Counted from the first letter of the stretch, positions 4,092-64,000 are shown. The stretch: 64,000 nucleotides of DNA from Macrostomum lignano (GCA_002269645.1 NIVC01001210.1:248001-312000), one strand, 5' to 3'. Translations and numbers: made by a program. The notes: a model not told the origin generated them from the sequence alone.

Positions 4092-9177
<5,086 letters not shown>

Positions 9178-12286: not shown

Positions 12287-12325
<39 letters not shown>

Positions 12326-12654: not shown

Positions 12655-12697
<43 letters not shown>

Positions 12698-18788: not shown

Positions 18789-18852
18789 CAAATGAATGCG
18801 ACTGCACTTGGAATCGAGCCTGGGCCGCTGGCACTCCGGAGCTAGGCTACAT

Positions 18853-22019: not shown

Positions 22020-23228
22020 AGCTTGGCATGGCAGATAGAAAACTAATAATGTCAGTAATATATTAGTAGGCTTTAAAATGTTATAGGGGCCTATAAAGTG
22101 AATTCACAAAGATTAATTGAGAAGAAAACTAGGGTAGACTAATTTATTTAATGGTTAAGGCCTATATGTATCTGGTTTATTTTTATTATCTAATGGTAGG
22201 CCATGCTAAATTATAATCACCACTTAACAACTAATAAGTAGCAAGGCAAGTCATAGGCCTACTTCATCTTGTTGCTTACTTTATCTTCAACTACTTCAGT
22301 ATTTAAAATTCTAAATTAGTTATAAATCTAAGCAATTTTAACAAACTATATTTTATAGGCCTAGAAGCTAGATTTTCATATTGAATGCCAAGAATTGGTT
22401 TTAAAATGAAAGACTATGAAATTGAAAGACTCATGCAAAAATATAATGTTTGTAATGTTAACAATAGTGGAATTACTATTGTTAAACAGCATTTTAAGCT
22501 AAAAAATAATAGACTTCAAATCAAAAAGTTTCATTACTAGGGATTAAACTAGGCCTACTAATCTTTTTAGAGCCATGTTTCCTAATTAAAAAATTGTGGC
22601 TAAATATTCTTGTGGTTAAGTCTAGGCTATAGCAAACAAGCATGTGCATGCTATTTATTGGCATTTTCTATTGCCCTATATGTGAGGAGAGGACCCTAGT
22701 AGGGCCTACATTACAAAAAATAGGGCTAATAATTGAGCAATGATAAGTTATAAATATAACCATCTATATAAGCATTTAGCTATAGGCCTATGCACTAATG
22801 CACTAGGCCTATGCTTTTGAGAGCAAAAATCTACATCTTGGCTTTCATGTGATATGCCTTTAATGCCAAGCCTATAGGCCTAGGGCCTATGACAAAAATA
22901 ATAATTATAGGGGTCTAGGCTAGCTAATGCTAATAATAAGTATGAAAGAGATAAATTTTGAAAACGTAATTTTAGTCCACGCATGCATGCATGGACGTCC
23001 GTCCGCGGCGCGCGGCCAGCACCTCGTGCGGGCCAGATTGGAAATGCAATCAAATTTAAATTACTGTGACGATCAACTTCATGGAAAATAATGAGCGAAA
23101 ACCACGATGTGTACGAGCCAGGAGTTCAAAAGTAGCCAGTGACACTTTTGATCGCTGAGCAAAGACGAAAACACCTACAATGACAATTTTTTACACATTT
23201 TAAAGAAAATCTGTTATTTCCAATGAAA

Positions 23229-23709
<481 letters not shown>

Positions 23710-23720
23710 GGCCAAAGTTT

Positions 23721-36225: not shown

Positions 36226-38715
36226 ATTTCTAAAGCTTCATTTTTAGCTAATTGATTTTGCGCTTCAACAGTAATCAAGAATCGATGGCTGGAACAACCG
36301 GCAATTAAAAAGGACAATTTTCTGATGTCGAAAAATTACGACCCCTCTAGCATTATAAGAAAGTGTTTCAAGTATTGATACGCAAGCTCACGAATCGGCA
36401 CGATAAAAAGGTACTTGTTTTCATGGTTTCTTTTCCATCTGCAAAGACTGCTTGATGGATAACCCATAGGCCGTTAACTCATCTGCTTCGATAGCAGATG
36501 TCGTCTCAATAGCCAGATGAAAGTGTCCGCTTCATCAGAGACCTAATCGGCATGCCTTCTGATTCATGAAACCAGCTTTCAGTGAAAGCCTTAGCTGCTT
36601 CAGCTATCCAAAAGTTTTTATTCTATTCTATTCATTTCTTTGTGCCGTCACTTCCCTCCTTAAACTGTTCATTTCCGAGGTTTCACCGTTGTAGTGTCGT
36701 GTAGCAAAGCAATCCACGCAGTTTTATTGCATTGTAAGCCGTGCTGTAGGCCCTAATTGTTCGCATTTTCCTATCACGCTATCCCAACAACGGGTACACG
36801 CATGGCTCAGAAAAACGAGCCACTCGACAATCTGTTGCAAACGAAGCAAAGTATTAATTCCAATTTCTTCAATGTAGCAACTACACAGCGTAGACTCCGG
36901 ATAGACTCGTAGAAACTCGCAGATTGTAGAAGTTCAGCTTGTATGCGAGTAAATAATGGTTAAGCAATGTAGGTATAAATTGACTATGGTCGAAAAGTAG
37001 AAGCCTAGCCCGAATATTTTGGGACCGTTTTGTCTTCAGATTAACATAAATACAAGTATTGACTCTCCATGACAGCTCCGCACTCTGATCAGGCAGATTT
37101 TCTAACTCTTCAAAAATAACACCGAGAACTTTCTAAGCTACTTGTAGTAGGGCATCCTGGTTTTAATGGGTAATAAAGCCATATGATCTTTGGTAATAAC
37201 TATATTGGATTTCTGCAACTAATGATTTGTAAGTATGCATCTTCAGTATGGATATAGTTAAAATTACTGGATTTTTGCTTGCAGATATCAAATTAAAGCT
37301 AAGTTTACTAAAGACTACTGCATAAAAAGTATAGAAAAAATAAATTATAAAAGTAAAATTACTTCTTAAAGCAAAAAACATGGAGCACAATAAACAACAC
37401 TATTCTGATCTGGGTGTTTCAAAACACGATCACGTGACAATTGTACACGGGTGTGCGCAATGCTCAACATCTTTGAATTTAGTATATTAGTTCGTCGAAG
37501 AAGGTAAGTTTTAAAAAAACGATTGGCTTTTTGCTAATAGAGTCGAAGCAGATATGTACTTTTTATGAAAAACGAATGGAAGCACCCGAACAAAGCGTAA
37601 AATAATAATCTGACTCGCTGAATCGACTATATCAGATGGTCGATCTTAACCTGCATTTTTCCAATGATTTTAACTAAAAAGTGGCGCTAGTTTTCAAGGC
37701 TGGGAGTGACGAGGATGCGCAGCCAAAGAACTGGTTGAATCCGGAATATCCGGAATAAAAGGATCTTTTTTTCTAGACTTTTACTGCATGAAAGAATCGA
37801 TTTCACTGTCCACTTAACTTGGGAAAATTGTGCTGAAATGAGGAAGCACGCGGGTATTCATGTCAGTCTGGGGCTGATGTTGGATTTATTACAAGGTTAA
37901 ACATTAAACAGTTTCTTAATTTCAGTGGAATCTCCCTTACGTGTCTCCAGCCAAACGTGTATTCAGCTCGAAAAAACGCACACTGGACCTCACCGGTAGC
38001 TATTCTATTTAAATTCTATTGCTTCATTTCGAAATTTGATACCGCACGAGCAGCAGAAGTGAAAATGTGGGGGCGGGATAGAATTTGTGTTCGAAAAGAA
38101 AGCTATTTTGGGTTCGTTTCGTCTGCTTTATATTGTCTCGCTCATGCTTCATGTAATGTTCACCATGACACGAATAACGTGTTACGAATAATTTTCTTGT
38201 CGAAAAGGGATGCACAAATTTATAACCATGTATCAATCGGTGAATCTGGGAAAACAGTTTCAAAAAACAGTTTCAGGTTAACCTCAGGTTATGACTCAAG
38301 TGCCGCCCTAAAGCTACATGTAAGGCTACCGGTAAATCTGGGATAAGTATGATGCCCACAGGGATTCTACCGGAACTGCAATTTGTGAGCCCAGACAAAG
38401 TAGGTAAAAAAGGAATCAATTGTTTGGAAGTCTTACTTAGAATAAAGTCTGCTGCATCATACGCTGGGGCCTTTTGTGCTATTCTTGGCGTGTTCCTTCC
38501 AGGCGGGCGTCCTGACAAAAAGCAAACTTCTACACGTGCTGCGGAGTGGATGGAGCTTCCCTGAAAAAAATCAGTTTTGTTATTTTTGTGCCGATGCATG
38601 TTATTCAGCTGCAGTTGGCAGACCAGATCAAGTACGAGTGTATGAAGTTTGTTGTAAAAAACAGACTCTCAATAGATTTATAAACATTTTCCATTCAGTC
38701 TTCGTACTGAAGGCG

Positions 38716-39478
38716 GTTGCGTACTGAAGGCAGTGGCGTATTGAAGACAGTGGCTTTCTGAAGACAGTGGCTTACTGAAGACAGTGGCTTTCTGAAGACA
38801 GTGGCTTTCTGAAGACAGTGGCGTATTGAAGACAGCGGCTTTCTGAAGACAGTGGCGTATTGAAGACAGTGGCTTTCTGAAGACAATGGCTTTCTGAAGA
38901 CAGTGGCGTATTGAAGACAGTGGCGTATTGAAGACAGTGGCGTATTGAAGACAGTGGCGTATTGAAGACAGTGGCGTATTGAAGACAGTGGCGTATTGAA
39001 GACAGTGGCGTATTGAAGACAGTGGCGTATTGAAGACAGTGGCGTATTGAAGACAGTGGCGTATTGAAGACAGTGGCGTATTGAAGACAGTGGCGTATTG
39101 AAGACAGTGGCGTATTGAAGACAGTGGCGTATTGAAGACAGTGGCGTATTGAAGACAGTGGCGTATTGAAGACAGTGGCGTATTGAAGACAGTGGCGTAT
39201 TGAAGACAGTGGCGTATTGAAGACAGTGGCGTATTGAAGACAGTGGCGTATTGAAGACAGTGGCGTATTGAAGACAGTGGCTTTCTGAAGACAGTGGCGT
39301 ATTGAAGACAGTGGCGTATTGAAGACAGTGGCTTTCTGAAGACAGTGGCTTTCTGAAGACAGTGGCGTATTGAAGACAGTGGCGTATTGAAGACAGTGGC
39401 TTTCTGAAGACAGTGGCTTTCTGAAGACAGTTGCTTACTGAAGACAGTGGCTTTCTGAAGACAGTGGCGTATTGAAGA
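38716..39478. repeat. 17-bp minisatellite (GAAGACAGTGGCGTATT / GAAGACAGTGGCTTTCT), about 45 copies
   Basis: Period 17 measured; homogeneous centre, variant edges. Confidence 0.97.
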
Positions 39479-42400
39479 GGGTGACATACATCGAAATCGC
39501 AACTGTCTATCTGATAGGTGATGCTCCCATATTTTTGTGTCACACCAAATTATCAAGTACGCGCCTGATGACTAACTAAGGACTATGGTAGATAGCTAGA
39601 CAATCAGATTTTCACGATCTTCTATTCCAGCTGGCGTTGATGATGCGTAGCCACTGAATCCCTGTCTACATAGGATATCAGCAGGCTACGGGTCCCTGAT
39701 GCAGGTGCTATGCATAGATTTTTGTCTGCCAGTCTCGGCATGAAATCAGATCTCTGGCCGTCTTCACGCTTCTGTGATTAGCACACTAGGTCGACTCGTC
39801 CTCCAGCTCTCTCACCCTCGTTCCCTCCGTGCCGCTGCAACTATGGAGCTCAAAATATCCTGATATTAACCATGCAAAGATCAATCAAAATGCTGGCATA
39901 GGCTAGTCAATGCAGGCCCAGTAAACAGCAACTTTTTTATCTTTTTCTGGATGTCGTAGCTTCATGCTTTGGCTTTGATTTGACCACAATGTGATCTAAT
40001 TATTTCTTCAGGAGCTCAATCAAGGCCTCTTCTCTAGGATCTATAGGACGAAAACAGGCTGAGATCAAAGATACTCGTACCTTAGATAGCCGTATTGATA
40101 CGAAATTTCGATTTCAAGATTCCTGATTCTATGCAGCTGATATATTTTAAAGCAAACTTTCCACGCATCGCATCCCGAAAATGCTCAAAAAAACGATTTT
40201 TTTCGTGGTTCTTAGGAAACAGCGAGCATTGTATCCCATGAGAATTTCGACATATCTTATAGTGTAGAGGGTGCTTTCTAACGGATTGAAGCTGCATAAG
40301 TATTGAAATAATTTCAAAAGCGAACTCTGATACTTATGGTAGTGAAGCTCCTGTCAGGAATTCGGGTCATTCATCACTTGCATGATATGAATAGGCTTGA
40401 GAAGGGTCGATCAGCTTTTGAGCTACTGTTATGATCTGATGGAATATGCATGCAATGCTATCTTTATTCGAAGAACAGTAATTAAGGAGGGTTGCGTTGG
40501 AGGCATGCTTCGACCTAGGAAGCGTATGCATAAAAAGTTGCAGAATCACTGCTCAGTACTAATCTTGAAGCTATGAACTAATGTTGAGCCGAATCAAATT
40601 AGGGAGTCAAGCAATGGCCAATCCCAGTTCAGGTAGAATCTGGTGAGAGACGAATGGAGAGAAAGATTATTGGCTGAAAGCGAGAAAGGGAGCCGTCAGA
40701 TGACAGGGAAGCCTCTGTGTGGCAGCGTCTGTGGAAAATAAAAACTCAATTCTGTGCTCAACTGAGCCTTGGTTACATCCCACGCAAACAGGCTGGAACT
40801 TCCGTCCAGAGGCTATACTTTCGAATTCATTGTTTCCGTATTTCATCCAGTAAATTCGCTTGCTGCTTAAGGCTGCCCTGATGAACTGCCAAACTGGACA
40901 AACAGTCTGCGGCTTGCTGCTGCTGACGCTCTGCCTGCCGGTGACTCTGAGCGGAGGTAAGCATCTCCCGGACCTCTAGGCTGTAGCTGTATACTTGAGC
41001 GTGTACATAGTGACAGCAGCGCGAGCGTGCCAGCGTTGGGCAGTGGTGCAAGAGTGAACGAACGATGCCTGGGCGCTTAGACGGAGATGGCACAGGAGTC
41101 TCATCCGGAATGCTTCCGTTCTGTACTGTTGCTATTAATGATAACAGAAACTGTCACCATCTCAGTATCAACCTTACTTTGTAAGTGCATATAAAAATTG
41201 TCACCAACTGTCAGTCATCGTTCGAGCGTAGGTATTTTTTTACACGAAATCTTGGAAAATCTGCCAAGGTTAAGTTGCTAGCTCTGCTTAAGAATTACGT
41301 CATTCAGTGAAGTATAACGGCTTGGTCGATGGGTAAATGATGTTTTATGAAAGCACCGTCAGTACAAGCGTACAACTTTTTTAGCTTCAGCAATCCTCCC
41401 TCCCCAAAGTGACTGCTTTTTCGGGAGTGCCGATATGAGGCTTCGCAACTAACCATTGTTCCGTCTTCATCGTTCCGTTACTACGATGATTGACTGCCGT
41501 CGGCTTCAGAAGCAGATATTCTTGATTTTTTATATGTACATTTTGAATTTCTGTCCCAAATCAACACCCACGCTATTCCCGCTTCCTGTTGCATTCCTAA
41601 TAGTTTCAGATTTTTACCTGGGGAAAATTTCCCATTATAAGCGGGGCTTCTAGATAAATTTGACTTTTTATATGATGAAGGGCCATACTAATTGATGCTG
41701 GGTGACCAAAATAGTGAGACTCCTTATAACAAGCCAAATTAATTTAGAGAAGAGAACTCGAAAAATGTAATTGAATTCATCATTGAGCCTGCGTCATCGA
41801 ATGACCTCAGTTGCTGTTCACCCGGGACACACCCTTCACAGGGAAGTATCATTATTCCCCGGTCACCATTAGAGAGATTAAAAGTTGGCTTGGCTTTGAA
41901 GTCCGGACAGACTCAGTGAAATAGAGCACGGATTACAGAGAGGAGCGGCAGGACATGCTCCCAATAACAGGGTACCCTTCCATGCATATTTTGCCTCTCT
42001 TGTCTCTGCATAAGTTAAGATGAAGGTAACGATGGCTGACTCTGATTTGAATAGCAAGATGTCTTCTGACCTACCGGCATTTAATCAGAATATCTGATGA
42101 AGAAAGCAGATTATTTGAATTAATAAATTTCGTTCCAACTTGCAGAGTGTACGCTCGTATCGTAGCATAGCGCTGATCCGAGCGGATCTTAGGATTAAAA
42201 TGGCTGCAGATTGGGATCAATAAACCCGGGATTAACCCTCCCCCCCAAATTGAATTTTATGCCCGAACTAAGGAGGAAAAACCGAATCTGATCCAGTCTG
42301 ATGCGGAATCTGTCAGCTCAGTAATGAAAATAATATATAAATTAGCTCACAATCTTGCTTTCTCTGGCTGGGAAGACTTACAAAAACAAGTTTTTTTCAA

Positions 42401-47631: not shown

Positions 47632-50385
47632 CTACTCCATCTCAGTCACCTGAATGATCTCCTCGTACTTCGGCGGCTCCTCGTCGGCAGCGAAGCCCGA
47701 GTTGGAGGCTCCCGCGGCCACCTCGTCGTAGCTAGGCGGCATGTCCGGCCTGCGGCGCGTCCTGTCCGAGAAAAGATCTGAGGGCAGTCGGCCGTCCGAC
47801 ACCGTCATGGCAGACGGCGCAGAGCGATGATGGCTCACGGCTCGGGAGCGAGACCTCGAAGACCATCTCTGGCGCAGACAGGTCGAAAGCGCTACGAAAG
47901 CCGTCGCAAAGACGAAGAGCCCGATGAGTACACGAACGATGAAAGACCAGTATTCACTCTGTCCGCTGGACCCACCTTCCGTGCAGTTTGCTTCATCGCT
48001 TGAGTCGCTGCAGTCTGTTTGACCGTCGCACACTTTGGCCGATAGGATGCACTCTCGGCCGTTTGAACAGCGCCACTCTGGAGTTGTGTTGAATTCGTTA
48101 AAACTTGTTTAGCTCGTACTGAATTACTTAATTTACCAATTCATGGCGAAATTTGGAAGCAAACTTTCATGACGCTGACTCCTTAGCGCGCACATGCACA
48201 TGGATACGTGAGCAGGCGCACACTCACGCAATGTGTACAGCGGCTCTGACTTTCTAATCATCAGACACTCTTTGTGCCTTGGGCGTTAGCCATCATGTGC
48301 GAGAATCGCAAAAATCTTTGTGCATTTTCGTGCGCGAGCCTCGCATTAATGTGACTGCATCCGGAAACGAACCTGGGTACGTCGTTGGCGCGAGAGCCAG
48401 ACGCATTGCCACTAGGCTACTTTAAACCCCTCTGTTCATTTCTCCCGATTGTCTTTCGATTTCATATTTGCGAATACGAGCTAAAGATCTATGCCTTCTT
48501 ATCGAAAGATTTTTATAAAACGTACCGCTACTTCCACACTGAAGAGTGCCGTTGACGCCATTGGAACAGTCGCCGTCAGTCACACTTAGGTCATCCAAAA
48601 GCACCGTGTGAACTTTGTCCCATCGATTAGCTCTGACTACGAGGACCACGCTAGTAAATGAAGATATCGCTTCCGAGCTAACTGATCCACTCATCCGATT
48701 CCACTGATTGATAGGTCCAGTTGTGGTCAGCACCACCATCGAGTGTCCTGGATAGGTTCCGGATATTTGAACCTCCATTTGGAAGCTGAACCCGTTGGAG
48801 CCCACTCCGTAAAACCATAATTCGAAGCACCTTTGGCTGCTATACCCAAGACGGCGATTGGACAAAAAAACGGCATCCTCGCTTCCGGGACGCAATCGAA
48901 GCATCCGCTGAGGCAGACGCGGCACACCCCGATCCGGCACTGAGCTTGAAGTGTGGTCCAAGAACGAGCTGATTCCGAATTCACTGGCTACGCTAAAGTC
49001 GGTGACAACTGGCAAGTTAACCGTCTCCCAGCCGCAGGTTGACCACTCAAACGAGCAGATGAACGGCATTCGGCTCTCATAAGCGGAATTACTGCACTCT
49101 GTGGGTTCAGCGCTCAAGTCGTCAAGCCAGTGCGCGCCCCCAGTTGATTTATTCCTGCCATCATCTGACTGGATGATGTTTACATCGATCCAGCCGCCAG
49201 AGAATCCAGACTCAAGCTGCACTTCAGCCATGCTCCAAGTGGTCAGGCTCCAAAGAGCTGGCAGCCGCAGCAGTACTCGACCACCATTCGATTCGGTAAG
49301 CGTCAGGGCCTCGTTATCTGTAGTAAAGCCATTTGATATCCAGTAGAATCGGTAGCAGGTTGCAGATTCTGCTTCGGCTGCAGCTTTGAATCCAGACAAT
49401 CTCAAAGGCGATCGCGTCCGTTGAGCGAACTCAACAGACTTTCGCTGCACTCTCAGACTGCAGTCGCGTAAGTCAAGCTTCTGGCTGAAGTGGTTCGAGT
49501 GGTCCACTTTGCAATCCACCCAGGCATCTTCTCTTTGAATGCTGTGTGCGCCGGTTCGACCAAGAGCAAAATTTGTGCCGAAGTTGCCAGGTGAATAGCA
49601 GCGAGCGTATTCGTAACTTTCGTCGCTTGACATTCCGGCAAAGAAGTCGCTAGAATACGGCCGACTGCAGTCGTTAATGGAGTCGCAGCGCTTGCTGAAA
49701 TTAAACCGCGTGCGATTTAAAGTGAGAGCTTTCAAAAATAATTTTACAGCACACAGTTATTTTTTTAGTGATTTTGTTCTGCATGAACTCACCTCGAATT
49801 GATTTCGGATCCGTCCAGGCACCGATGTCTCCCGATAAGGCTAGAACTGTTTTGCCCCGGCTTCAAGTTTCTGGAGTCCTCGGTAGCAAACTCCGCTAGG
49901 AACAGAGTCACTCTTTCAAGCTTGGGCTGCAAAACTTCAACGTTGTGTACAGTTAAGAAATATCTGTTGATCGTGTCTGAGATGCGAAGGCAGATAGGTC
50001 CGCTGTAAAGACTTTCAGGACGCAGAAAAACAAACGTATCGGAGTCGTCTCGCTGCCACAATATAGAGCCGTTACCCGCGTAGTTAAGAAACGAGTCGTG
50101 CTCACTTTTAAATCCAAATAAAAAGTAAGTCTCATTAGCAGAATAGAATTCGAGCTGTTTGAACTCGATGCACAAGACGTCAGATTCGTTTCTAAACTCA
50201 ATTTCGAACTCGTAGACGCAGTGCGATTGCACAGGTAATGAGTGGGGAAAGTTTTCACTGACGAATATCCCGCTGCTTTTAGTGGTAGAACTTGCATCAA
50301 TATTGAACACTTCTCTGCAGGCGAGGCAGCAACTCTGAAACAGCGTCAGCATCAATAGCTGATAAATCCTCAATTTAAAAATCAT
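47632..50385 (-). CDS. Receptor paralog A: signal-CUB-LDLa-MAM-MAM-LDLa-TM-PPxY x2; exons 50385-49793, 49694-48526, 48077-47632 (735 aa)
   Basis: Exon lengths 593/1169/446 give phases 2 and 1 and an open frame; CGSSEWRCSNGRECILSAKVCDGQTDCSDSSDEANC LDLa; CSFEWSTCGW...DHT...LDDLSV..GDC MAM; PPSYDEV and PPKYEEI. Confidence 0.88.
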
Positions 50386-51261
50386 GTCTGTCCGTTCCTT
50401 GTGTTGATCTCTGCGAGAATAGCTAGATGGAAACTTTTGTTGTCTCATAAACACTGGCAAAGCACCTATTGCTATGCCTAATAGCATGAACAGCGCAAGG
50501 TAGGAAAGCTTGAGCAAAGACTTTAAGTGGTGATAAGATATGCTCGATAAGTACGTTCACCGCACAGTGGGCAGCACCGTAGCACTGTCGACACCCGTGT
50601 TGATATCAAAATTTTAATCGTCAAATTTATATTTGTTTCTATGATGATATGCTTAAAGACGATTCGAAAAAAGCAAGCATTGCATGGTGCCGTTCTGCAC
50701 CTGGCTGCGGGACCTTAAGACACATTCTACCATTTTGCTTGAGACGCGCAAATCTTTCGCATTGTCAAAAGACTAAAATGTTGACTTATACGCCATGCAT
50801 GTAGTGCACTCGTACAAGATGCCTTCTTAGATTTTAACACTGCAAGAGTTCTTGTTTATAGTTCTTATTTTCATTTTTGTAAAGCTTGGGGAGTATTAGG
50901 ATAGGATTGAGCTGGAATCTTTGTGTTTTACCAAACTGGATTTTACCATTCAGAACTTACAATGCTGCCTTCATTGCTTTCCGATTGTAATTTTTCTTCA
51001 TTTTTTATGAAGCTACAAGGCTATTAAATTGAGTAGCAGAGTTGGTGAGTCAAAAAGGACTGATCGACCGATCATGGATCAGTTATAGTCCAAACATGAC
51101 CAGTCATTCAATAGACATGGACTGAATAACCACTCATTGGCCTGTGTTAAATCAGTCATTGAAGTTGATAGACAAACCATAGACCTGTTAGATCTGCAAT
51201 AAACCAGTAATTAAGCTGTAATAAACCGGTATAGTCACTGACCGGCCAGATCAATTTAAGA

Positions 51262-51589
51262 TTAGCCATAGACAAATAATAGCTCATCGTAGACCAGTCC
51301 GCACAGAAAGAGAGACACGGTGCTGAATTTCGCTATCAAGTCGGCTCTCTTAGGCGATATGTTGGCGGCGTCAATATTCTCCGATTCTTCCCCGTTCAGC
51401 AGCTGATTTTTCACTGCCTCTGCTTCGTCTCCTACTGCATCGTCTGGGACTTCGGCGTCGTCTGGCTGTGGTGGAGCAGCTTGTTTTTTGTTGCTCAATA
51501 AGCTCTTGTTTGTTTCCTGAAACCGGTAGGCCATTGTCTCTGAGAGCTGCGCGCAGTTGGGCTACTGTTAACCGGTCGAGATCAGACAT
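51262..51589 (-). pseudogene. Frameshifted SAP-domain plus acidic-linker fragment, probably transposon-derived
   Basis: LDRLTVAQLRAALRDNGLPVSGNKQELIE is a typical SAP motif; continuation lies in another frame after an A-rich run. Confidence 0.6.
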
Positions 51590-52113
51590 GACGACAGATG
51601 AAAAATTTTAGAGCTAAAAAATTGAGCTCACGCAGGCAGCCAAAAACGCTGAGTAAGCAGAGCGAGACGCAAAGAAAAGGGCAGACGGCGCAGAGGCTAA
51701 TCACTGGTAAATCTCTCGCCAGCGCATTAATTAATTATTGCCAGTGAGTCTTGAATGGGTAAAAGTAGTGAGTAGGGACTAATGCTGACGAGAAGTCCAG
51801 CTGTTTCGTTAACCGAGTTGCCAGATTTAGAATATGGCCTTGCAGGTACGGATGTCTGAAGAGGCAGCACGGCTTTGGAAGATTAATACAGTCGGAGTGA
51901 CTTTTCGATACAGTCCGACGGCATTTCGATACAGTCGGAATGAAGGCATCTCGTATCTCTCCGCGTTTTGGAACTGGCAAGACGTCTTGGAGTACAGCAC
52001 TGCTAAATTGACTACAGGTAGTGCCGCTTGCCCAAATTGAGCGATTTTTGGTCTTGCTTCAAGTTTTAATACGAGTACACAAGCCAGAAAAGTAGGTTAT
52101 TACCGAGAAAAGT

Positions 52114-55100
52114 CCCTATGAAAAATTGGCCCGAATTTTCACCCTACTCTTCACCCGAAATCGTCAGCACTTTGCGGGTGTAAAAATTGCCGGGCTACTG
52201 GCCCGGAATCGTTACGAAAAGTTCGTTTTTCGGGCGATGCACCCGTGCATGCACCCGCATTTATACCCGAATATTTACGGGCGATTCACCCAGAATTATT
52301 TTGCGCCGAAAAATCCGGGCCAGTTAACCGATATTTTGCTTGCAAATCCGGCCCGAAGAGCTGGTCATATTTCCTGCTTTTGGTCTTAGTGATAGTGCAC
52401 GATATTATAGTAAGTTTTTAGAGGGCATAAACTTAATTACGGTGACTGCCACTTTTCATAATGTAATAAAACTTGTATCTAGTTGAATAGGAAGATTTTG
52501 CATGTACGAGCTAAATGACCCCCTCCAAGAGAGCTACATGTATCGAGAAGAAAAATAAGGCAATTCTGGAGGGATTCAATAAGAAATCTAGATCTAGATA
52601 GAAATGTTTAAGCTTGGCCACATAATAAGAAAAAGTGTGTGTGATAGTTTATTTAAATATTTAATGAATGCATTCAATACGTTCAGTAAGCAAAAGCATT
52701 AAAGCATTAAAGTAATAAAAGCAAAGGAGGGTTAAGAAAAGAATCGAAACAGAAACAAACAAAGTTGTAAAGAAGATAACATGAAGGGGCTTGACGTAGA
52801 GAAATTCTGAAGAAAACCATAAAAAGGAGAAATAACTAACTATTTATAGGGCATTTGCAGCTAAGAAATAACCAAATATACTAGTACGTTTGCAACTGAA
52901 AAGAGGTAGATCTAAGGCACAGAGTGCAAGGAGAGGGGTGCACACAGAATGCACATGTGAAATAGCTAAGATAGGGAAAGTATTAGCGCGAATATGGAGA
53001 AAGGAGAGAAACGATGTGAGGGGGAAATAGCAACATTCGGAAGGATAGGAAGAACCGAGATCAGTAATGGGGTCTGGTGCAAATTAAGGTGACTTCGAGA
53101 TCCCTCCCTCCCAGTCGCAGCCACATTACGAAGCAATGAAAAAAACAAATCAGTGTAGAACAAAAGCAAATGCGATAGAAATTCATAAGTTCAAAGTTTA
53201 GGTATAGATTTATAACTCAGCGAGCGACAGGATGCGATACTGCGCTTGATTGAACATGTTAGCAGTGTCACTGGTTGTGAGCCTGGTGCTGGGTGGCGTA
53301 ACAGCAGATTCTGGCAGCTGAGATGCTGCAGCACCAGCTAATCGAAGCAGCGCACCTGGAGTAGAAGGGGGCGCAGTTGCAGAAAAGCGTCAATAACGTT
53401 TTAAACAACACTACAATACAAAAAAATGAAAACATCACCTGGTTTGGTCTTCGTCGCCTTTCTAGCGACGCTGGTCTTTCTCGGTAGTTGGCCCTCTCGG
53501 CATCGGGAGTAGGCACACTGCAGCTCGGATTTTGTGATTTTACATGACTTTAAAATAGACTGTTTGGGCTGGAGTATGTCGCCTAACACCAGTCCTGTAG
53601 TGCACGGCATAATCCCGGCGACGACGCTTAGCAGTCCAATGTCATCAGACATTAATGGCCAGAGGAAAACTTGGCTGAGGGGCATGTATACATAGCATAA
53701 ATGACTTAGGAGCATGGTATGATGATGCTAAAATTCTGTTTATTGAGCAATAAAATCTAAACCTAAATTAAAAGGCAACAAAATTGATTATTAATAATTT
53801 TTCTTTAATTATAATGGTATAAGTACAGTGCTTGGAATGTTAAATCTGATGGTAAATGTTTATTCTACAAAACATATTCAGATTATTAGATCTAAAACAT
53901 TCATATAAGAGCAAAAAGAAGGCTTATTTATAAGATATAAAGGGCCTTTATCTCTGGGAATATGTTAAATTGCAAAACTTTTTCAAGTTATTAGCTTCCT
54001 TGAAAAATGCTCAGTTCTAGGCTTTAGGTTCCCTTAGAATATAATAAGTTATCAAAATTATATTAAATAAAATACAAAAAGCATACAGATTAAAAAATAA
54101 TGTGAATACATAGCTTTCTAAAAAGTACTATATAGACTATACAAACTTGAAAAAGCAAAAATTATATTAATGCTACTCAGAGTTTTATGAGCTATATTTG
54201 GACTTTATAAATGGTTTTTTAAATTGATTTGTTACTTATGTTCTAAAACTTTTTACCATTCAGCAAGCTCTCTGTGCTCATATACAATACTATCTTCATT
54301 ATAGGTGAAATATTAATCAGGATAAGTTTTCTAAATTATTTTCTATTTTTACTAACTTTAAGAAATAAATAAATAGGCTAATTACTGGACTTAATTAAAT
54401 TATAATTAACTATGTGACTGCCAATTCCTGAACCAGGGCAGGGGCAGGGGGTCAGTCCTTGCTATTGACTCATTTAGTGAAATAATTCACATTGACTATT
54501 TTTGAAGTTAAATAAACTTTGTCTGTTAGATTATGATAAATTAATACAAAAGTAACAAAACACGCTTCACTAGCTAGCACATAAAATATCGAAGTTCTGA
54601 AAACGTGGCGTCTGAAATTTAAATATTTTTCGAGTAACAAAAACAAACAAAATAGTTTCCTAGCTTTTTTTCACATTGGTCAGCGCAATGAAAGAGTGAA
54701 AAGCACAGCAAATACTTAATAAAAATAGATTTTAGCCTGTGAATAGCTTATTCAGAAACAGGTATTTATAGTAAGCGATTGTAAATGATTTCACTTCCAT
54801 GGGCCTTTTCATATTACCAATTCCAGAACCAGAATCGGTTCGGAATTCCAAGAAAAACAGCAGTATAACTATTAAACTCTGTTAATATTTGACTGCCTTA
54901 ACAACCTAACTTAGCACAATTTTTCACTTTCTTCTTGGCGATTGTCATTCAATAATAAAAACTTTATAGCACGTATCTCCCTCTAGTTATGGAGACAAAA
55001 AGTTATACTTCACAAATTGGTTCTGGTTCTGGAACCAGAGCAAGCAATATGAAAAGGCCCCATGTCGCCAGCCGCATCTCAGCCGCGTCAAAATTTTAAA

Positions 55101-55605
55101 CGCAGTCCCCAGACGCGGCTCGTGTAAAAAATTAAAGATTAGCATGCAAAAAGATTCCCCAAAAGGGCATGGAAGGGCATGGACATGGAAGTAATGATTT
55201 CGACACATTATTTCCCACCATTTGTGATCGATATATAAACTCCTATAATAGTACTTTTTAAAATAATAAACATACATGTACGGTTGAATCTTGGAACCTG
55301 GGCACCTAGCTTCCTACTCGTTTAGCTATATTGATTTAAACCCATTTTTAATCTGCATCGTCAAGTCAAAGTCCCTCAGGACACGCTTTTAGAAAAAAAC
55401 GGGCTAGAGACCCGCACGTCTGGGTTTCTGCTTTCCCCGCTTTCCGGGCGAGAGTCCCGCTTTTTCGCCCGATTTAGTTTCAACCGTTTTGTCGGCGTGC
55501 TTTCCGGGTGAATCGACCGCTTTTTAGTTTTCACCCGCAAATTTAAAGTTCCGGGCCCAATTTCATATGTTTTCGGGCGAAAATTCGGGCCAATTTTTCA
55601 TAGGG
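52114..55605. mobile_element. CACTA/EnSpm (CMC)-like non-autonomous element, 3492 bp
   Basis: TIR CCCTATGAAAAATTGGCCCGAATTTTC at 52114, inverted at 55579-55605; 2-bp GT duplication on both sides; many CCCG/CGGG subterminal motifs; weak transposase-like remnant FLWPL...VVAGIMP at about 53560-53690 (minus). Confidence 0.78.
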
Positions 55606-56053
55606 GTGATTCAAGCCCGACGGAGGACCAGGGATCGCCAGAGTTAGCCAGAACAAGTCCGCTAGCTCGTCTAAAGTTTCGAAAAAAAACTTCGATGACT
55701 TTATAAATTTATTTGTCTTTACGAAGATATTTTTGATAAATGACTTTAAAAATCGAAGAGAAATAAAATTACAATACAATTTCACCTGCAAAAACTGTTT
55801 CGGTCCTCGTCGAGCATATCAAAAAAGCTCTCTGAGATTGATTTTTTAAACCTATAGCACTTACTCCGATGTTCGGACCGGAGTACGTGCGACAGAATAC
55901 GAGGCGTTAAAATTTGACAAGACGTGAATGATTAAAGAATTGAAATAAAAAACTATACAGATTCTGCTACGAATATATGGAATCAAGAGTAAGCAAGAAA
56001 AAGTTATACACGAATTCGTGAAAGGTTTTTCGCGTTTTTATCGTTAGGTTCGC

Positions 56054-58681
56054 TTAAACAGTGGAGCCGCTGCTCTCTTCCTGGTTTTCATTGCCACTTC
56101 TCGCCCTGGGTGGTCGCCGAGGTGGCAGCTGAGGCGGCTGGGATTCTTGCTGCTGCTGCTGCTGCTCCTGCTGCTCTCGCATCTGTATCACCTGAATGAT
56201 CTCTTCGTACTTCGGTGGCTCCTCGTCGGCAGCAAAGCCCGAGTTGGAGGCTCCTGCGGCCACCTCTTCGTAGCTAGGCGGCATGTCCGGCCTGCGGCGC
56301 GTCCTGTCAGAGCAAAGGCCGGGCGGCAGCCGACCGTCCGACACAGTTACCGGTGGCGCCCGGCTGTGGTCAGCGAGGCCTCGAGGCCCGCGACCCCACC
56401 AGAGGCGCCTCTTTCGAAAGCAGATGGACAGCGTCAGAAAAGCCACGACGCTAACTGAGATGCCGAGAACAATGCGAAGGATAAGGGACCAGGCATAATC
56501 TCCAGATCTTTCGTAGCAGTTAAGCTCGTCACTGGCATCCGGGCAATGTATTCGACCATCGCAACGATATCTCTCCAGAATACACTGCTGCCGATTGGAA
56601 CATCTCCATTCTGAAGTAGTTTATTCAAAAGACTTAGTCTAATTAGTATGGCACTTCTGCTAGTACCGATATACTCGTAATACGAGTATTTTAGAGAACA
56701 AGGGAATAATTTTTCTATCTAGTATCCGTATTTCATATATCTTTCAATCTCTAGAAATACTGGAAATACTCGTAGCTAAACAACAAATTTACCACGCACC
56801 ATTGGATCCACATTGCACTGATCCGTTGTTTTCGACATTACAGCTGCCCTCAAATACGCTCAAGTCATCCAGTAGCACCGTAGATAATTCGTATCGATCC
56901 TCAGCTAGCATAGTGACACTTATGATTGGTGATTTTGGGAGCATCGTCATAAAAGTGCCACTCAGACGGTTCCATTGGTTCATTGGCATAGTTGTCGTTA
57001 GCAAGACAAATTCATTAGGAAGAATCCCGGATATCCGAGCCTCAACCGTGACGCTGTAGCCGCTGTATCCGACACCATTGAACCAGATTTCAAAGCACCA
57101 AACACGGTCGAATGCCAAGCGACGCTTGGACTCCAGTTGTCCTTTGAAATTGGTTCCCGGACGCAGACGGAGAACCCGTTGCGGCAGTGGTGGCATCGTC
57201 CGGTCTGGCACCGATATCGAGGTGTGGTCCGATATGCTGACTCTCAACTCTTTTGCAACGCTAACGTCGGTGACGACTGGCAAGTTGGTGGCCTCCCAGC
57301 CGCAGGTTGACCACTCAAAAGAGCAAACGAACGGCATCCGGCTCTCATATGCAGACTTGTCGCAGGCAGCCGGCTCAGCACTCAAGTCGTCAAACCAGTG
57401 CGCTGCCGTAGTCTGATTGCGTTGTTTCGACAGAAAGGCATGAACATAGATCCATTTATTCGTGAATCCGGGTTCTAGCTGGATTTCAGCCAAGCTCCAA
57501 GAGTAAAAACTTTTGCGAGCTGGCAGTCGGAGCAGGACTCGGCCACCATTCGGCTCCGACAGAGTCAGGGCCTCGTTGTCATCGGTGAAGCCACTAGAGA
57601 ACCAAAACAACCGGTAGCAGGATGCGGACCGCGTGTTGGCAGCCCATCTAATTCCGTACAGCCAATAGTAAAGCGGAAGTGAATTGGTGTTGCCCATCCG
57701 AATTTTGAGACTGCAATCGCGGGTGTCAGAGAATGGGAATTGGCGCGAGTGGTCGGTACGACAGTCACGTTCGGTTCCCCAAGTCGAGAGGCTATGTGCG
57801 CTAGCCTGACCTAGGGCAAAGTTGGTGCCAAAACTGCGGTTTGAATTGCAGCGCGCGTGCTCGTAACTTTCATCGCTTGATTGACCAGCGAAGAAGTCGC
57901 TTTGGTACAACTGGCCGTTGTTTCTGCCACAGTCAATTACTGAATTACAGCGGGCGCTGGAAAGCACATTCATGGAGGATTTTTTCTTGTATTTATGGAG
58001 GATAAACAGTATTTCCCCATGTATAATGAACTTTGGTTAATAAAGTGCCTTTTGGTCCTTTTTTGAAGCTCACCTTTCGTTTAAATAGCTGCCATCCAAG
58101 CACCGGTGAAGACCCAAGAAACTTGAATTGTTGTCTATCACTGTCCCCGAGTCCATAGCCTCGTACTCAGCGTAGAAGCGAGTCATTCTACCAATACTGT
58201 TCTCATAAAATTTCCGATTGACCACAGCCACCAGATGAGTGGACATTTGGTAGTTGCAATGCATGCAGAGCGGTCCGTTATGCAGATTTGATGGCCACTT
58301 GTGCACAAATTTACTAGCGTTGGCTCTCTCCCATAAGAGCGAGCCGTTCCCAGTGTAGATAAGGACCGCGTCGAAATGACTCGAACCTCCGACCATAATT
58401 TGCGTCTCCTTGTCCGAGTTCTCGTTCACAGTGAAGAGTTCCAACTCCTTGAATCGAAAGCACAGGACATCGGAGGCGAAGCTTAGTTGCACTTTGAATT
58501 CGTAGACACAATAGGACTCCGTTGGCAGCGAGTGTGGAAAATTTTCGCTGACGAAAACTCCTCGACTGTTAGCGCTTGTTGGACGGCCGTCGACGGTAAA
58601 CACTTCTCTGCAAGCGAGACAGAAATTCGCATGTTGAAGAAGCTGCAACACCGACAGCAGAAGCAGCAATTTTCCTGTCAT
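56054..58681 (-). CDS. Receptor paralog B: same architecture; exons 58681-58074, 57956-56800, 56610-56054 (773 aa)
   Basis: Exon lengths 608/1157/557, phases 2 and 1; EWRCSNRQQCILERYRCDGRIHCPDASDELNC LDLa; TM; PPSYEEV, PPKYEEI, poly-Q and PPQLPPRRPP tail. Confidence 0.9.
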
Positions 58682-60566
58682 TTGAGAAGAGTTTTTTGCT
58701 TCTATATGTCTGAATCTACTCTTGGATAAAAATTCGAGGTGTATATAGGTAAATCAAAGTATTGGGTCGATGCACTGAGCGTAAGTGGCTGGCTCTGTTT
58801 GCTAGCTATACACTTATTTCTTTGCTTTTCAGTATTTCCACCAGCAAATAAACTCTAGCATAAACAGTTTTTTTCAATGCGATAAGATATTGTGCACTTG
58901 CTGGGCCAGTAGAGGGGAGTTAGATACCGAACCTGCTCACTGCCTTTCAGCTCGCAGCAGTCTGAGTTGCCATGGCGATAGGCTTGTGCAGTGCAGGACT
59001 CGAGATTACTCGAGGTTGAGAATTGGAAGCCTGCGAGATATCGCTTTTCGCAGGCCTTATTAACTGTAGCAAATTTCCTGACACATCCGCAACCTGAGTA
59101 GTTCTCTAGAGGATGTTGGCGGTAAAATATTTTGGATTAAACTATATGCATTTTGAAAGAACTATGAGCATATCCTGAGTCTCAAATAACTCCAAAAAAA
59201 GCAATCAAGTGGCCAGAATGAAAGGCTAAAGGTGTCCCCAAGTAACGTCTAAGCCTGTCTTTTTCTCTTTATGGAACCCAATGATTAAAATTTTGCAGGG
59301 CCTTTATAGGCTTTATCTCTTAGCTTTGTTTTGGTTGAAAAAACAAAATAGACCCAATTTAGTTGGATTCGCTGCAATACGGATGCTATGGAGATGAAAT
59401 ATAAAGTTTTAAGATGAAAGTGTAAGCATCATTACATGTAAATTATACTGCAAAGACTCGGTGAGTTTTATGCATCTGTTTATTCTTAGAACGCGTAGCG
59501 AACTCCGGTCGGAGGGGCTGTTACACCTCGAGTTGTTATAATTCTACACATTGGCTGGTGAATTTTATTATTCCATCTGATAAATTCTGTTTATCCAGAA
59601 ATTTAAAGAAAGCTACGAGGTAGGTTTTAAACTTTGTTCTCTTGATGCCTCTGGATTAAGCTGAAAATATGTAAATATTTTTAATCTTTTTCTATTTCGT
59701 ATGAGCGTAGCTCATGTCCTGGATGGTGTCACACATTATAGCGACCGTTACTAGCAGGTAGCACGTACCTGCATCGGACTCACTCCTATAACCGGCTTTA
59801 GCAATTTCATCTGAACACAATTGAAGTAGCAATATACTTCATTTTTATTCGTAGCTCTAGTGCAATCTACGCGTTTTGTTTAGTTCATAGGCACTGCAGG
59901 TTCACTTTACATAGAGCGCGCGCTCTGAGCAATTGCCGGGCATAACTGGTCTATTATACTCGGATGCTTTACTAACAATAGTTGCGCACTCAGCTAAGAG
60001 TATCAGAGCCAACTGGACAGCCCCCCATCGGGGTGCAGGCCGGCAATTGTAGTTAGACAAAGCGCGCTGTTATTGTAAGAGCCTGCCATATGGCTTCATA
60101 GGGGCTAATTGGCATCGTACGCACTGGCGTGGCGCACTTATGATTTTCTAATTGGGCGAGAATTAGCATAATTATAAACGGATAGAACGGTAGACGAAGC
60201 CTCTATCTTTTTATCCGTATTGCATTGGTTGCTTCTGCATAGTGGTGGGGGGTAGACTGGACCACAATCTCCTAGCTATTGAATACACAGTTTGTAATTG
60301 TACATATAATGACATGAGTAGTCATACACCAGCCTGCAGCCCTGCTGTGCACACTTGTCTGCTACGGTCCCCTAAAAGCGCCGCTCCAGAGAGTGCACCC
60401 GATCGGATGCTATATATATAAGATAAGCGTAGAAGCTCTTCGGCAAAAGAAAAAAAGAAAAAAATGGAAAATTCTCTATGCTCGTAAAGCGCAACGATTT
60501 TGTCAGTACGAGCCGTAATAGTAAGTAAATTTTTCTGAACCCTAGATACTTCGGCCTACCGATTGC

Positions 60567-60677
60567 GCATGCAATGAGTGGCCGACATTAGCCATCTAAC
60601 CGAATACAGTTCCGGTTTTATAATGCACATGATGCATAAGAGCTGCTTGTAGTTTAATGTCGCCACTCATTGCATGC
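60567..60677. mobile_element. 111-bp MITE-like palindrome with about 24-bp TIRs
   Basis: GCATGCAATGAGTGGCCGACATTA ... TAATGTCGCCACTCATTGCATGC. Confidence 0.6.
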
Positions 60678-61149
60678 CTATGCGAGCCTGAAGCAACTTC
60701 ATTTCAGCTTACCATTGTCCCTATTTCGCATGAGGCAACCTTTTTTTCTGTCTTTGGAATCATGCGATGTATAACAACGTGAAAAAAAATGCATGCAAGT
60801 TTTTAAATAGGTCAGAAACAGCATTCAAGGCTAGCTAGTAAGCTCGTCAGACGCTAGGTAATGCGTCTGACTCGCACATTAATTTGGGGCTCGGGCAGGG
60901 GATTTTGCAATTCTCGCCCAAGAGCCCTTTAAGTCTCAGAGGTTTGTTCGTGCCTGACGATAAGAAAGTTAGAGGGCCTCCGTACTCTGCGTGCCTGCCG
61001 TGTACAGAGTGCCTAGAGTGTGTGTCGGAGTACATGCGTGTCAGCTGTGGTCAGCGGAGTGTACACGACTGCTTGTTCCCTCCCTCGCTGCCTGCTGGGT
61101 CAACTGTCGTTCTTTATCTACTGGAAAAATAACTAACTTCATGTAGCCA

Positions 61150-61335
61150 CAGGGGCGTCGCCACCGGGAAGGGGGACAGGGGGGAGGCATGCCCCACCCA
61201 GTGAAAGCTAAAGCCCCACCCCACCTTGTGACCCGTTGGGGAAATCCGTAGTTTTGCTTTAGGGCGCCAAAATATAACGCCTTTGGCGCCAAAATGAGTG
61301 CCTGTGGCGCCAAAATGAGTGCTGGCAACACCGAT
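61150..61335 (+). mobile_element. End fragment of a GC-rich non-autonomous DNA element with GGCGCCAAAAT internal repeats
   Basis: CAGGGGCGTCGCCA start, G/C runs, three GGCGCCAAAAT units; no partner TIR found. Confidence 0.35.
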
Positions 61336-62058
61336 TCTCAAAAAATGTACATGTGGGAATTTAGTCATGTACTGAGTACATGTAAGACGTAGATTTCATG
61401 GGGACGCCCCTGCGTAGCCGCCAACTGAGTCAGACTAGCCAAGAGCTTGAGTTAGAATATAGCCAAGCGCTCAGGTACTCGAACTCTGTTTCAAACTCAT
61501 GTCACACTAATATGTTATATGTTATTTATTTCTTAGGACTAGTTGTGATTACTTATCGTAGATTGCCTATACTTACGAGTATAGTGGAACCCAATAAGTT
61601 GATTTACAGTCTTATGATGCCGAGTTAAATATTCCAATTGATTACACTCTAGCAAGGACTATTCAAACATCCTTGAGGTTACTGAGTTAGTAACGCTTGG
61701 TCATTCGCAAAGCAACAAAACACTAAGTAAGTAACAATAGGCTAACTATTAAGAAACGCACTTTTGATTCGTTGGATACATTCGTGCACCAGGTAAATAA
61801 TTTTAGATAATCTCATTCATTACTGAAAAGTACTTCGTATGATGTTTAGTGTACAACGGCTACGTCCAAACAAATCAAGACGTGGGAAATTCTTCAAGTT
61901 TCTGTTAGTCGACATATCTAACTGTTATAGCCCGCCATCTAAATAGAATTTGAATTTCTCTTCTAGTTAGGCATCGCATTTCACAGTTGCGGAGTTGCAG
62001 ATTTGACAGTTCGATAGCGGAGAAACCCGCGTCCAGTCAGTTGACGACTTCACAAAAG

Positions 62059-64000
62059 CTAATGTTGGGGGTGAAGTTCTTCGTACTTTGGCAGCCCCTC
62101 AGTTGCCTCCTCGTAGCTTGGTGGCGCCTCTGGTAACTCATCCAGGCCTGTCGATTGTGCTGCAAAATTACCTGCCGTTTGATGGCTGCTACGAGCAGAC
62201 CTGAGCCGACTGTACTGGTAAGCCCCCAGAAGCAGAAGCAGAATCACTACAACGCTGAGCGGCAGGATGGCTGTCCAGTTTGGCGCCGCGGCTACGAAGC
62301 AATGAGCTTCGTCGCTTTGATCACCGCAATCAAAGTGACCGTCGCATATCTGGTTGACTTGAACGCACTGCTTCCTGTCAGAACAGAGCCATTCTGAAAG
62401 AAGTACGAGGTACGAAGTATATATGATCTGTCAGAATTGGCAGGGATCTGAAGTCACGCTTAGGTTTCTAGTAGCCAGAAGATTTTGACTTTGGGATTTA
62501 ATCAGATTTTGATTCCAGATTTGGAGCATGAGCAGCCAGCGAATAAATAGTATAAGTTTGCACAAACCTAGTATCCCACACTCTACTGTGCCATTAACTT
62601 CGTATTGGCGAAAGCATGAATCATCAACAATGCTCATATCGTCTAAAAACACGGCACGGGTTGTATTGCTTGACTTCACTCTGAATCTGATTGCTACGTT
62701 TGGATGCCTCGACTGTCTTCCAGCTTCGACGCCAAAGGTGCCGGACAGGAGACGCCACTGATTGTTCGGCACGGTGAGGGTCAGAAATGTCCAGCTCTCT
62801 ATGCCGGACAGCAAGTCGATAATGACGTCAATTTTAAAACTGTAGTCTCCGTCACCTAATCCGTACACCCAGATATCGAAGCACCATGAGCTGCCAAATG
62901 ACAAGCTGCGCTCGTACCAAATGCTTGCCATCCAGCTAGTCTCTGGGGTCATGTGAAGCATCCGCTGAGGCAGCCGGGGAACCCTCCGGCCTAGCACCGA
63001 GCTCGAAGTGTGGTCCGACATATTGACTCCGAACTCCTTTTCAACGCTCGCGTCAGTGACAACTGTCAAGTAATTCGTTTTCCAGCCGCATGTTGACCAC
63101 TCAAATGAGCATATGGACAACATGCGTTTCCCATATGCTGAGTCGTTACAGGCTGCGGGCTCGGCACTCAGGTCATCCAACCAATATGTGCCAATCGTTC
63201 GATTCTGCTGCTCCGATTGAATCGCAAGCGCATCGATAGAGCTGCCTGTGAATCCAGGCTCAATCTGCACCTCAGCGATGCTCCAGGTATAGAATCTCCA
63301 TCGAGCCGGCAATCGGAGCAGAGCTTTCCCACCGTTCGGCTCTGCCAGCGTCAGTGCCTCATCGTCTTTGTTGAATCCACTGGAAAACCAGAAGAATCTG
63401 TAGCAGGTTGCAGATCCCGGATTGCCTGCCGCCAGCAGACCAGACAGGCGAAGTTCCGGTATGAACGCTTTCGCTGATTTGGGTTGCAGCATAAGACTAC
63501 AGTCGCGAGAATCAGATAAGCTGCTAAATAGACGCGAATGATCCATTGTGCAGTCCAACTGAATGTCAGCAAGACTGTGTGCACTGGCCTGGCCTCGTGC
63601 AAAATTGGTTCCGAAGCTACGGGTTGAGTTGCAGCGTGCATGCTCGTAGCTTTCATCGCTTGATAAGCCCTCAAAGAAGTCGCTGCTGTTAAAATAATTT
63701 TCACAATCGTTGACTGTATTGCAGCGATCGCTGAAACGGAACAAATTTCGAAAATAAATTATAGTTTCAATTGAAATGTTGTCAAGTTTGTGACTGGGTA
63801 GAAATACTGGATTGGTTAGTTGTTGAGGTAAAATCTAAATTACCTAACCCTTTGGATGCTCCAAAGTTAATGTAGAATTTGATTTACCTTTTATCAACGT
63901 ATGTGCCATCCAGGCATCGATGCCGCGTCTCAGTACTTTTGATGAAGCCGGGGTTAGTCTGCCAGTTCGGATCATTAATATTAATCGCCTCATATAAGGC
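62059..64000 (-). CDS. Receptor paralog C (5' partial): exons >64000-63888, 63730-62568, 62393-62059
   Basis: RHRCLDGTYVDK AG|GTAAAT donor; same intron phases 2 and 1; EWLCSDRKQCVQVNQICDGHFDCGDQSDEAHC LDLa; TM; PPSYEEA and LPKYEEL. Confidence 0.88.

Follow-up and report, generated by a model that had tools for sequence, protein, structure and literature searches.

A 64,000-nucleotide (nt) stretch of contig NIVC01001210.1 (positions 248001-312000) from the Macrostomum lignano assembly GCA_002269645.1, hereafter the window, carries near its end a tandem array of three paralogous genes, denoted A, B and C, which are predicted to encode single-pass receptors combining CUB-like, LDLa and MAM modules with a short tail bearing PPxY-type motifs. 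The window and the contig are identical over 17,947 nt. The three genes are as follows:

47632..50385, minus strand: gene A (Mlig008522g1, PAA70735.1); exons 50385-49793, 49694-48526 and 48077-47632; complete, 735 amino acids (aa) from the ATG at 50385
56054..58681, minus strand: gene B (Mlig012733g1, BOX15_Mlig012733g1, PAA70736.1); exons 58681-58074, 57956-56800 and 56610-56054; complete, 773 aa
62059..64000, minus strand: gene C (Mlig002808), with its 5' part past the window end; exons 64000-63888 (cut), 63730-62568 and 62393-62059

Read from the contig beyond the window end, gene C encodes 712 aa. In the NCBI model, gene A begins at an ATG further upstream (50487), giving 769 aa, and our spliced model of gene B corresponds to PAA70736.1 over all 773 aa, as judged by eye. 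All six introns of the array are bounded by GT..AG and measure 98-448 nt, and exon lengths place intron 1 in phase 2 and intron 2 in phase 1 in each of the three genes, none of which contains stops or frameshifts. Splice sites, exon lengths and open frames thus bear out the sequence-only reading of the locus, a preliminary annotation made without database searches, which had proposed an array of three same-strand paralogs with three exons, phases 2 and 1, and intact frames. The array has exactly three members, tblastn having recovered no further copies or fragments in the other 47 kb of this stretch. The cluster is non-random and represents a genuine gene family. All three genes are already publicly annotated, as hypothetical proteins, with automatic UniProt names such as "CUB domain-containing" and "MAM domain-containing protein". 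The gene models of this assembly were built from RNA-seq-guided transcript assembly (PMC5730564) and, therefore, spliced transcripts with these junctions exist.

Pairwise identity among the three proteins is 45-54%, with tblastn E-values between paralogs ranging from 1e-108 to 1e-170. Identity amounts to 51-54% in the core (domains D1 and D2, below) and to 36-45% in the N-terminal domain, in line with the initial estimate that the ectodomains are roughly half identical. From the N- to the C-terminus, the predicted architecture consists of a signal peptide, a CUB-like domain, an LDLa remnant (LDLa1), a MAM-like domain (D1), a MAM domain (D2), a second LDLa (LDLa2), a transmembrane segment and a short tail:

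49828..50328, minus strand: CUB-like N-terminal domain of gene A (aa 20-186), equivalent to 58109-58621 in B; sub-threshold Pfam, PDB profile and fold matches
49598..49827, minus strand: LDLa1 remnant of gene A (aa 187-230); 57848-58108 in B and 63631-63922 in C; sub-threshold Pfam and direct reading
49094..49597, minus strand: D1 of gene A (aa 231-398), without the CxFExxCxW start; 57362-57847 in B and 63148-63630 in C; hhalign and shuffles
48566..49057, minus strand: D2 of gene A (aa 411-574); 56840-57325 in B and 62614-63111 in C; Pfam, a custom MAM profile and hhalign
47983..48538, minus strand: LDLa2 of gene A (aa 584-619); 56516-56812 in B and 62299-62580 in C; Pfam and motif reading
47881..47949, minus strand: transmembrane segment of gene A (aa 631-653); 56423-56491 in B and 62209-62277 in C; hydropathy scan

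LDLa2 is the only module that passes the Pfam gathering cut-offs (LDLa PF00057, 24.1 bits; CUB PF00431, 21.4; MAM PF00629, 26.4) in all three genes, scoring 48.1 bits in A, 36.6 in B and 33.3 in C. It has six cysteines and a CDGxxDCxDxSDE calcium cage by direct reading and is interrupted by intron 2 four residues past its first cysteine; by score and motif, it is a canonical membrane-proximal LDLa.

The MAM domains were missed altogether by the full-length Pfam scan; scanning of isolated domains recovered D2, with 31.5 bits in A (above the cut-off), 20.5 in B and 12.5 in C, in all cases spanning profile positions 1-158. A custom hidden Markov model (HMM) of 35 MAM domains from Pfam-verified multi-MAM proteins scored D2 at 45, 28 and 34 bits in A, B and C, and in hhalign the three-paralog D2 profile matched the 35 MAM domains with 98.5% probability (E 2.6e-15). 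D2 carries all four MAM motifs (CxFE..CxW, DHT, C.FWY and DDI..C) and, judging from these profile matches, is a bona fide full-length MAM domain.

The assignment of D1 draws on more remote similarity. D1 has no Pfam MAM match in A, B or C, and our HMM aligned its C-terminal half only; the scores were 5.0 (A), 4.6 (B) and 0.5 bits (C), and the register was identical in each gene. In hhalign, D1 matched the 35 MAM domains with 51% probability (E 1.6e-4), its DHS, C.RFYW, W and DDLS..C residues being aligned to the MAM landmarks. The score of 28.6 lies about 8 standard deviations above that of column shuffles (11.3 +/- 2.1; maximum 17.9), none of 150 of which reached it; the CUB-like domain, used as a control in the same test, fell within the null distribution (14/150 shuffles reached its score). 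D1 is, thus, most likely a degenerate MAM domain that lost the CxFE..CxW start. A direct comparison of D1 and D2 yielded 2.6% hhalign probability, with only the DDLS..C end aligned, so that an internal duplication is not directly demonstrable. AlphaFold2 (AF2) modelling of D1 from the three-sequence alignment gave an unusable model, with a predicted local distance difference test score (pLDDT) of 37. The top PDB sequence-profile matches of D1 and D2 (basigin and ferritin) had E-values above 0.01 and were taken as chance hits.

For the N-terminal domain, the Pfam CUB scores of A and B (18.5 and 20.2 bits) are below the cut-off, and C has no match. All ten matches listed in the PDB profile search are CUB chains, that of cubilin with E 0.006 and the others with E 0.2-0.75. 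The AF2 model of this domain has low confidence (pLDDT 58; predicted template-modelling score, pTM, 0.56). When this low-confidence model was used as the Foldseek query, the top 21 PDB matches were all CUB domains (E 4e-4 to 4e-3; template-modelling score ~0.5 on single-domain targets). Although each of these lines is weak, they converge and support, at the level of profile and model comparison, the assignment of a divergent CUB-like domain. The adjacent LDLa1, which is split by intron 1, scores 18.1 bits in A and 14.8 in C, with no match in B, and aligns to positions 6-30 of the 37-position profile only. By direct reading, it has four cysteines, the first disulfide pair being gone, and an insert of ~10 residues before SDE, which identifies it as a remnant module. 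The CUB-LDLa-MAM-MAM-LDLa order is therefore essentially as initially proposed, but three of the five modules, CUB, LDLa1 and D1, are degenerate, with sub-threshold or no Pfam matches.

A hydropathy scan predicts one transmembrane segment per protein, each has a hydrophobic N-terminus by direct reading, and the ectodomains contain 8-9 N-glycosylation sequons each. The proposed single-pass topology holds and can be specified as type I (signal peptide, one transmembrane segment and short tail). Direct reading of the tails locates two motifs per gene:

47665..47739, minus strand: tail motifs of gene A, PPSY at 47728-47739 and PPKY at 47665-47676
56270-56281 and 56207-56218, minus strand: tail motifs of gene B, PPSY and PPKY, respectively
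62113-62124 and 62083-62094, minus strand: tail motifs of gene C, PPSY and LPKY, respectively

The double PPxY tail that had been ascribed to the whole family is accordingly present in A and B, but in C the second motif is LPKY. In context, the motifs read PPSY(D/E)EV and PPKYEEI in A and B, and PPSYEEA and LPKYEEL in C. PPxY motifs bind group I WW domains, and YxxPhi motifs bind the mu2 subunit of AP-2; YxxPhi contexts surround both tyrosines in A and B (YDEV/YEEV and YEEI) and one in C (YEEL). The motif residues are the sole invariant tail positions across the three paralogs, the remaining tail being unalignable, and they are retained in a second copy of the array (below) and in the alternative-assembly proteins. 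The tail of gene B alone has a proline/arginine-rich extension and ends in STV. One protein from an allele or the alternative assembly (P0001) differs in its juxtamembrane stretch and keeps the distal motifs unchanged; by eye, the difference looks like a compensated frameshift. A word-indexed search with the tail alone yielded zero candidates, not even the query itself, and is uninformative as to the presence of this tail cassette in other receptors.

The distal tails of A and B share a block of unusually high similarity:

47646..47805, minus strand: conversion tract of ~160 nt in gene A, with its partner at 56188-56347 in gene B; identity, proportion of synonymous differences (pS) and sharp alignment edges

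Within this tract, A and B are ~90% identical at the nucleotide level (blastn 89-91% over 160 nt), compared to a background of ~58%; the edges of the block are sharp, and pS is 0.28 versus at least 0.68 elsewhere. By these measures, the block is a gene-conversion tract rather than the product of protein-level constraint alone. The conversion predates the duplication of the array described below, because the same 89-91% is obtained when the two contigs are compared with each other.

A second copy of the array, in the order STX6-like gene, C', B' and A', is located on contig NIVC01002379.1 (1680-18073), with nucleotide identities of 99.5% for C', 99.1% for B' and ~97.7% for A' (exons). Redundancy is known for this M. 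lignano assembly (PMC5730564), and the second copy fits that pattern. C' holds two 1-nt frame-breaking indels, which may reflect either assembly error or early pseudogenization, and A' is intact, although it has not been called as a gene. Between genes A and B, the window contains an element with terminal inverted repeats (TIR):

52114-55605: TIR element of 3.49 kb with 31-nt terminal inverted repeats (97% complementary)

This element is exactly the stretch that is missing from the array on NIVC01002379.1; its termini and this presence/absence pattern identify it as a polymorphic TIR DNA-transposon insertion.

Synonymous sites are saturated between the paralogs (pS 0.66-1.0); therefore, the triplication is old. 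The ratio of non-synonymous to synonymous substitution rates (dN/dS) between paralogs is ~0.14-0.31 in D1 and D2 where computable, values that are indicative only, given the saturated synonymous sites. For the recent pair A and A', dS is 0.055 and dN 0.0136 (dN/dS 0.25), with 0.20 in the ectodomain and 0.52 in the tail, the latter being derived from eight changes that leave both motifs intact. These rates and counts indicate that the family is old, small and evolving under purifying selection. The succession of events was probably an old local triplication, a later conversion between the tails of A and B and a recent duplication of the array together with the rest of its genome block.

These data bear on the possibility that A, B and C are relics without function or artefacts of annotation. 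Several modules are degenerate and C' has the two indels, as might be expected of decaying copies; however, the three long intact frames with conserved splice sites, the RNA-seq-based gene models (PMC5730564) and dN/dS values well below 1 all argue for functional genes, and the C' indels are in a 99.5% identical copy from a long-read assembly, where they are possibly assembly errors. We consider this explanation highly improbable.

To what extent is the family restricted to this flatworm? An exhaustive profile search with the MAM core (D1+D2) against 1.84 billion representative sequences returned two proteins below E 1e-10, both from M. lignano, and word-indexed searches of 5.8 billion proteins with full-length queries recovered only four M. 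lignano clusters. The weak non-self matches to the core fall in individual MAM domains of very large MAM/LDLa repeat proteins (E 1.9e-8 to 9.5e-4). Two other weak core matches, an immunoglobulin V-set protein (P0005) and a bacterial-type carbohydrate-binding module (P0008), were treated as spurious or generic beta-sandwich similarity. No bilaterian orthologue with the same architecture was found in the libraries searched, where no core match from outside M. lignano fell below E 1e-10. Within these libraries, which may lack the transcriptomes of other Macrostomum species, the family can still be called lineage-specific. As far as these searches extend, the domain order has no counterpart, and the modules themselves are the most commonly shuffled ones in metazoans.

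The sequence-only reading had further described the family as expanding and diversifying, which would be compatible with a rapidly evolving recognition system (immune, gamete or self/non-self) with a positively selected ectodomain. The confinement of the family to M. lignano and the low identity of the ectodomains (36-59%) compared to that of the distal tails of A and B (92%) point in this direction. However, the tail similarity is explained by the sharp-edged conversion tract and not by contrast with a fast-evolving ectodomain. The divergence is old, with saturated synonymous sites, and dN/dS is 0.14-0.31 between paralogs and 0.25 in the recent duplicate pair (0.20 in its ectodomain). There are only three paralogs, with no nearby fragments or pseudogenes, and the searched tables of reproduction-related genes, possibly incomplete, do not list the gene identifiers. 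Uniformly low dN/dS and the lack of further paralogs had been named in advance as the outcome that would speak against expansion and diversification, and this is the outcome observed. This part of the earlier description is therefore abandoned, and a diversifying recognition family appears very unlikely.

Several known receptors share subsets of the architecture. LRP3, LRP10, LRP12 and NETO1/2 are type I single-pass proteins in which CUB is followed by LDLa and which have endocytic or auxiliary-subunit roles. Unlike A, B and C, they lack MAM and have other numbers of CUB and LDLa modules, and none was matched in the searches made. Neuropilins (CUB-CUB-FA58C-FA58C-MAM-transmembrane segment) resemble the family in being type I proteins with an N-terminal CUB and a membrane-adjacent MAM, and their CUB domains are among the fold matches of the N-terminal domain, but they have FA58C and no LDLa, and a PDZ-binding tail instead of PPxY. 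The heavy chain of enteropeptidase (LDLa-CUB-MAM-CUB-LDLa) unites the same three module types in one chain, and its CUB ranks high in both the sequence and the fold matches of the N-terminal domain; however, enteropeptidase is a type II membrane serine protease that also contains SEA, SRCR and protease domains, arranges its modules differently and lacks a PPxY tail.

MAMDC4 (endotubin) has an ectodomain assembled from MAM and LDLa repeats. This type I protein, with its large ectodomain and a tail of 40 aa, resides in apical endosomes and takes part in endocytosis (PMC11125477). MAMDC4 and MALRD1 share with A, B and C the type I single-pass topology, the combination of MAM with LDLa and a short sorting tail. 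By contrast, the multi-MAM/LDLa proteins matched in our searches have 5-17 MAM domains, alternating with LDLa, and no CUB, with no transmembrane segment or PPxY pair in the retrieved sequences. The relationship to MAMDC4/MALRD1 is, on these matches, one of domain-level similarity and not of orthology.

The best analogy for the tail mechanism is LDLRAD3 (LRAD3), a small type I receptor in which an LDLa module lies next to the membrane and the short tail has two PPxY motifs; LDLRAD4 and PMEPA1 are relatives in concept. The LDLRAD3 ectodomain consists solely of three LDLa repeats and contains neither CUB nor MAM, and no sequence relationship to A, B and C was detected beyond the LDLa module. PMC11150648 describes LDLRAD3 as a small receptor of the LDLa type whose two PPxY motifs are conserved, and the title of the primary study cited there (Noyes 2016) refers to the regulation of Itch and Nedd4.

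Taking module content, tail motifs and these analogies together, we consider the chances to be evenly balanced that A, B and C are endocytic or sorting type I receptors of the cell surface or endosome that recruit WW-domain proteins. Under this scenario, the ectodomain would bind an extracellular ligand or partner, with CUB and LDLa acting in their usual basic-residue, calcium-dependent mode and MAM mediating oligomerization or adhesion. The PPSY and (P/L)PKY motifs would recruit WW-domain proteins, most likely HECT ligases of the NEDD4 family, and the receptor and its cargo would then be ubiquitinated, internalized and sorted to endosomes or lysosomes. AP-2-dependent endocytosis through YxxPhi might operate in parallel with the PPxY route. 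Alternatively, by analogy with LDLRAD3, the receptor might regulate the ligase. The conservation of two motifs in an otherwise unalignable tail makes signalling through NEDD4-type ligases plausible.

Several observations count against this scenario. YAP/Yorkie, Kibra, MAGI and WWOX likewise recognize PPxY, which makes several partners possible. The second motif of C is LPKY, and the context of its first tyrosine, YEEA, is not YxxPhi. The degenerate CUB, LDLa1 and D1 may serve as structural spacers and not bind ligand, and the structure models have low confidence (pLDDT 37 for D1 and 58 for the CUB-like domain). Finally, the identifiers of A, B and C gave no hits, on expression or on immune or gamete roles, in a full-text search or in the supplements, possibly incomplete, of PMC5730564, PMC7336406, PMC5816591 and PMC12896417.

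The breadth of PPxY recognition allows for a contact-sensing role, in which homophilic MAM contacts at the surface or endosome would be linked, by WW domains binding the PPxY pair, to Yorkie/YAP, Kibra or an AMOT-like scaffold, the receptors acting as Hippo adaptors that regulate proliferation. The conserved motif pair and the presence of MAM are compatible with this possibility, and a loose precedent is vertebrate MAMDC4, which acts on YAP and Wnt from endosomes, its cytoplasmic domain working through AMOT (PMC11125477); however, the term PPxY occurs 0 times in that paper. Furthermore, the family shows no MAMDC4-type orthology, its best match to a MAM-repeat protein (E 1.9e-8) having a different architecture. 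A Hippo adaptor role thus seems unlikely.

The same tail tyrosines could instead dock SH2 proteins, in which case phosphorylation would switch off the binding of PPxY to WW domains. YEEI is the textbook optimal ligand of Src-family SH2 domains, and a C-terminal STV fits the class I PDZ ligand. Thus, PPKYEEI in A and B and LPKYEEL in C would suit such phosphotyrosine receptors, as would the proline/arginine-rich extension and PDZ-like end of B. Yet these latter two features are found in B only, the proteins lack a kinase domain, and the invariant prolines that precede both tyrosines are a requirement of WW, not SH2, recognition. We therefore view phosphotyrosine signalling as distinctly unlikely and retain a role in endocytosis or sorting, with recruitment of WW-domain proteins, as the preferred reading.

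A more far-reaching, and rather doubtful, proposition is that the family is a Macrostomum-specific invention. A domain order present in no other animal would couple MAM-mediated contact or ligand capture to WW proteins of the NEDD4 or Yorkie type and would serve a process peculiar to flatworms, for example epithelial uptake, adhesion or signalling in the stem-cell niche, with the tail kept uniform by conversion while the ectodomains specialize.

On its upstream side, gene C is adjoined by a syntaxin-6-like gene. Three UniProt models (P0004, P0016 and P0017) are 925-935 aa long, far longer than gene C (712 aa). P0004 joins the syntaxin-6-like gene to C (positions 1739-2916 and 4154-6623 of L001, a stretch of contig NIVC01001210.1, just past the window end), and P0016 and P0017, judged by length only, probably carry the same fusion. 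Such models may reflect a polycistronic precursor transcript, as described for this trans-splicing species. The window further contains:

51265-51607, minus strand: unannotated open reading frame (ORF) between A and B with a Pfam SAP domain (E 4e-11) and no NCBI gene call
4092-9027, minus strand: non-long-terminal-repeat retrotransposon with three ORFs, all open
7909-9027, minus strand: putative gag-like ORF of the retrotransposon
6890-7909, minus strand: APE-type endonuclease ORF of the retrotransposon
4092-6893, minus strand: reverse transcriptase and RNase H ORF of the retrotransposon
462-830: LIM-domain exon
24031-25072: degraded Tc1/mariner-type transposase
27124-28929: AMP-binding (acyl-CoA synthetase-like) gene
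29877-31362: galactose-3-O-sulfotransferase gene
12000-16000, 18850-19780, 23220-23770 and 38680-39560: repetitive stretches

A second frame that overlaps the SAP ORF continues with an acidic region, and this locus could be either a small intron-containing gene or a frameshifted pseudogene. Several satellite or microsatellite arrays within the repetitive stretches read as long repetitive ORFs, and the stretch at 12000-16000 is extremely asymmetric between the strands (GC skew up to 0.59, AT skew -0.43).

The array does not open a long-standing question, given that shuffled CUB/LDLa/MAM receptors and PPxY tails are both common animal themes. Rather, the locus illustrates gene conversion that appears to preserve a signalling tail while the ectodomains drift. 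If the proposed mechanism is correct, the family would offer a compact and tractable case of a CUB/MAM/LDLa mosaic receptor coupled to WW-domain ubiquitin ligases, in an organism, M. lignano, where the availability of RNA interference and transgenesis makes this mechanism testable.

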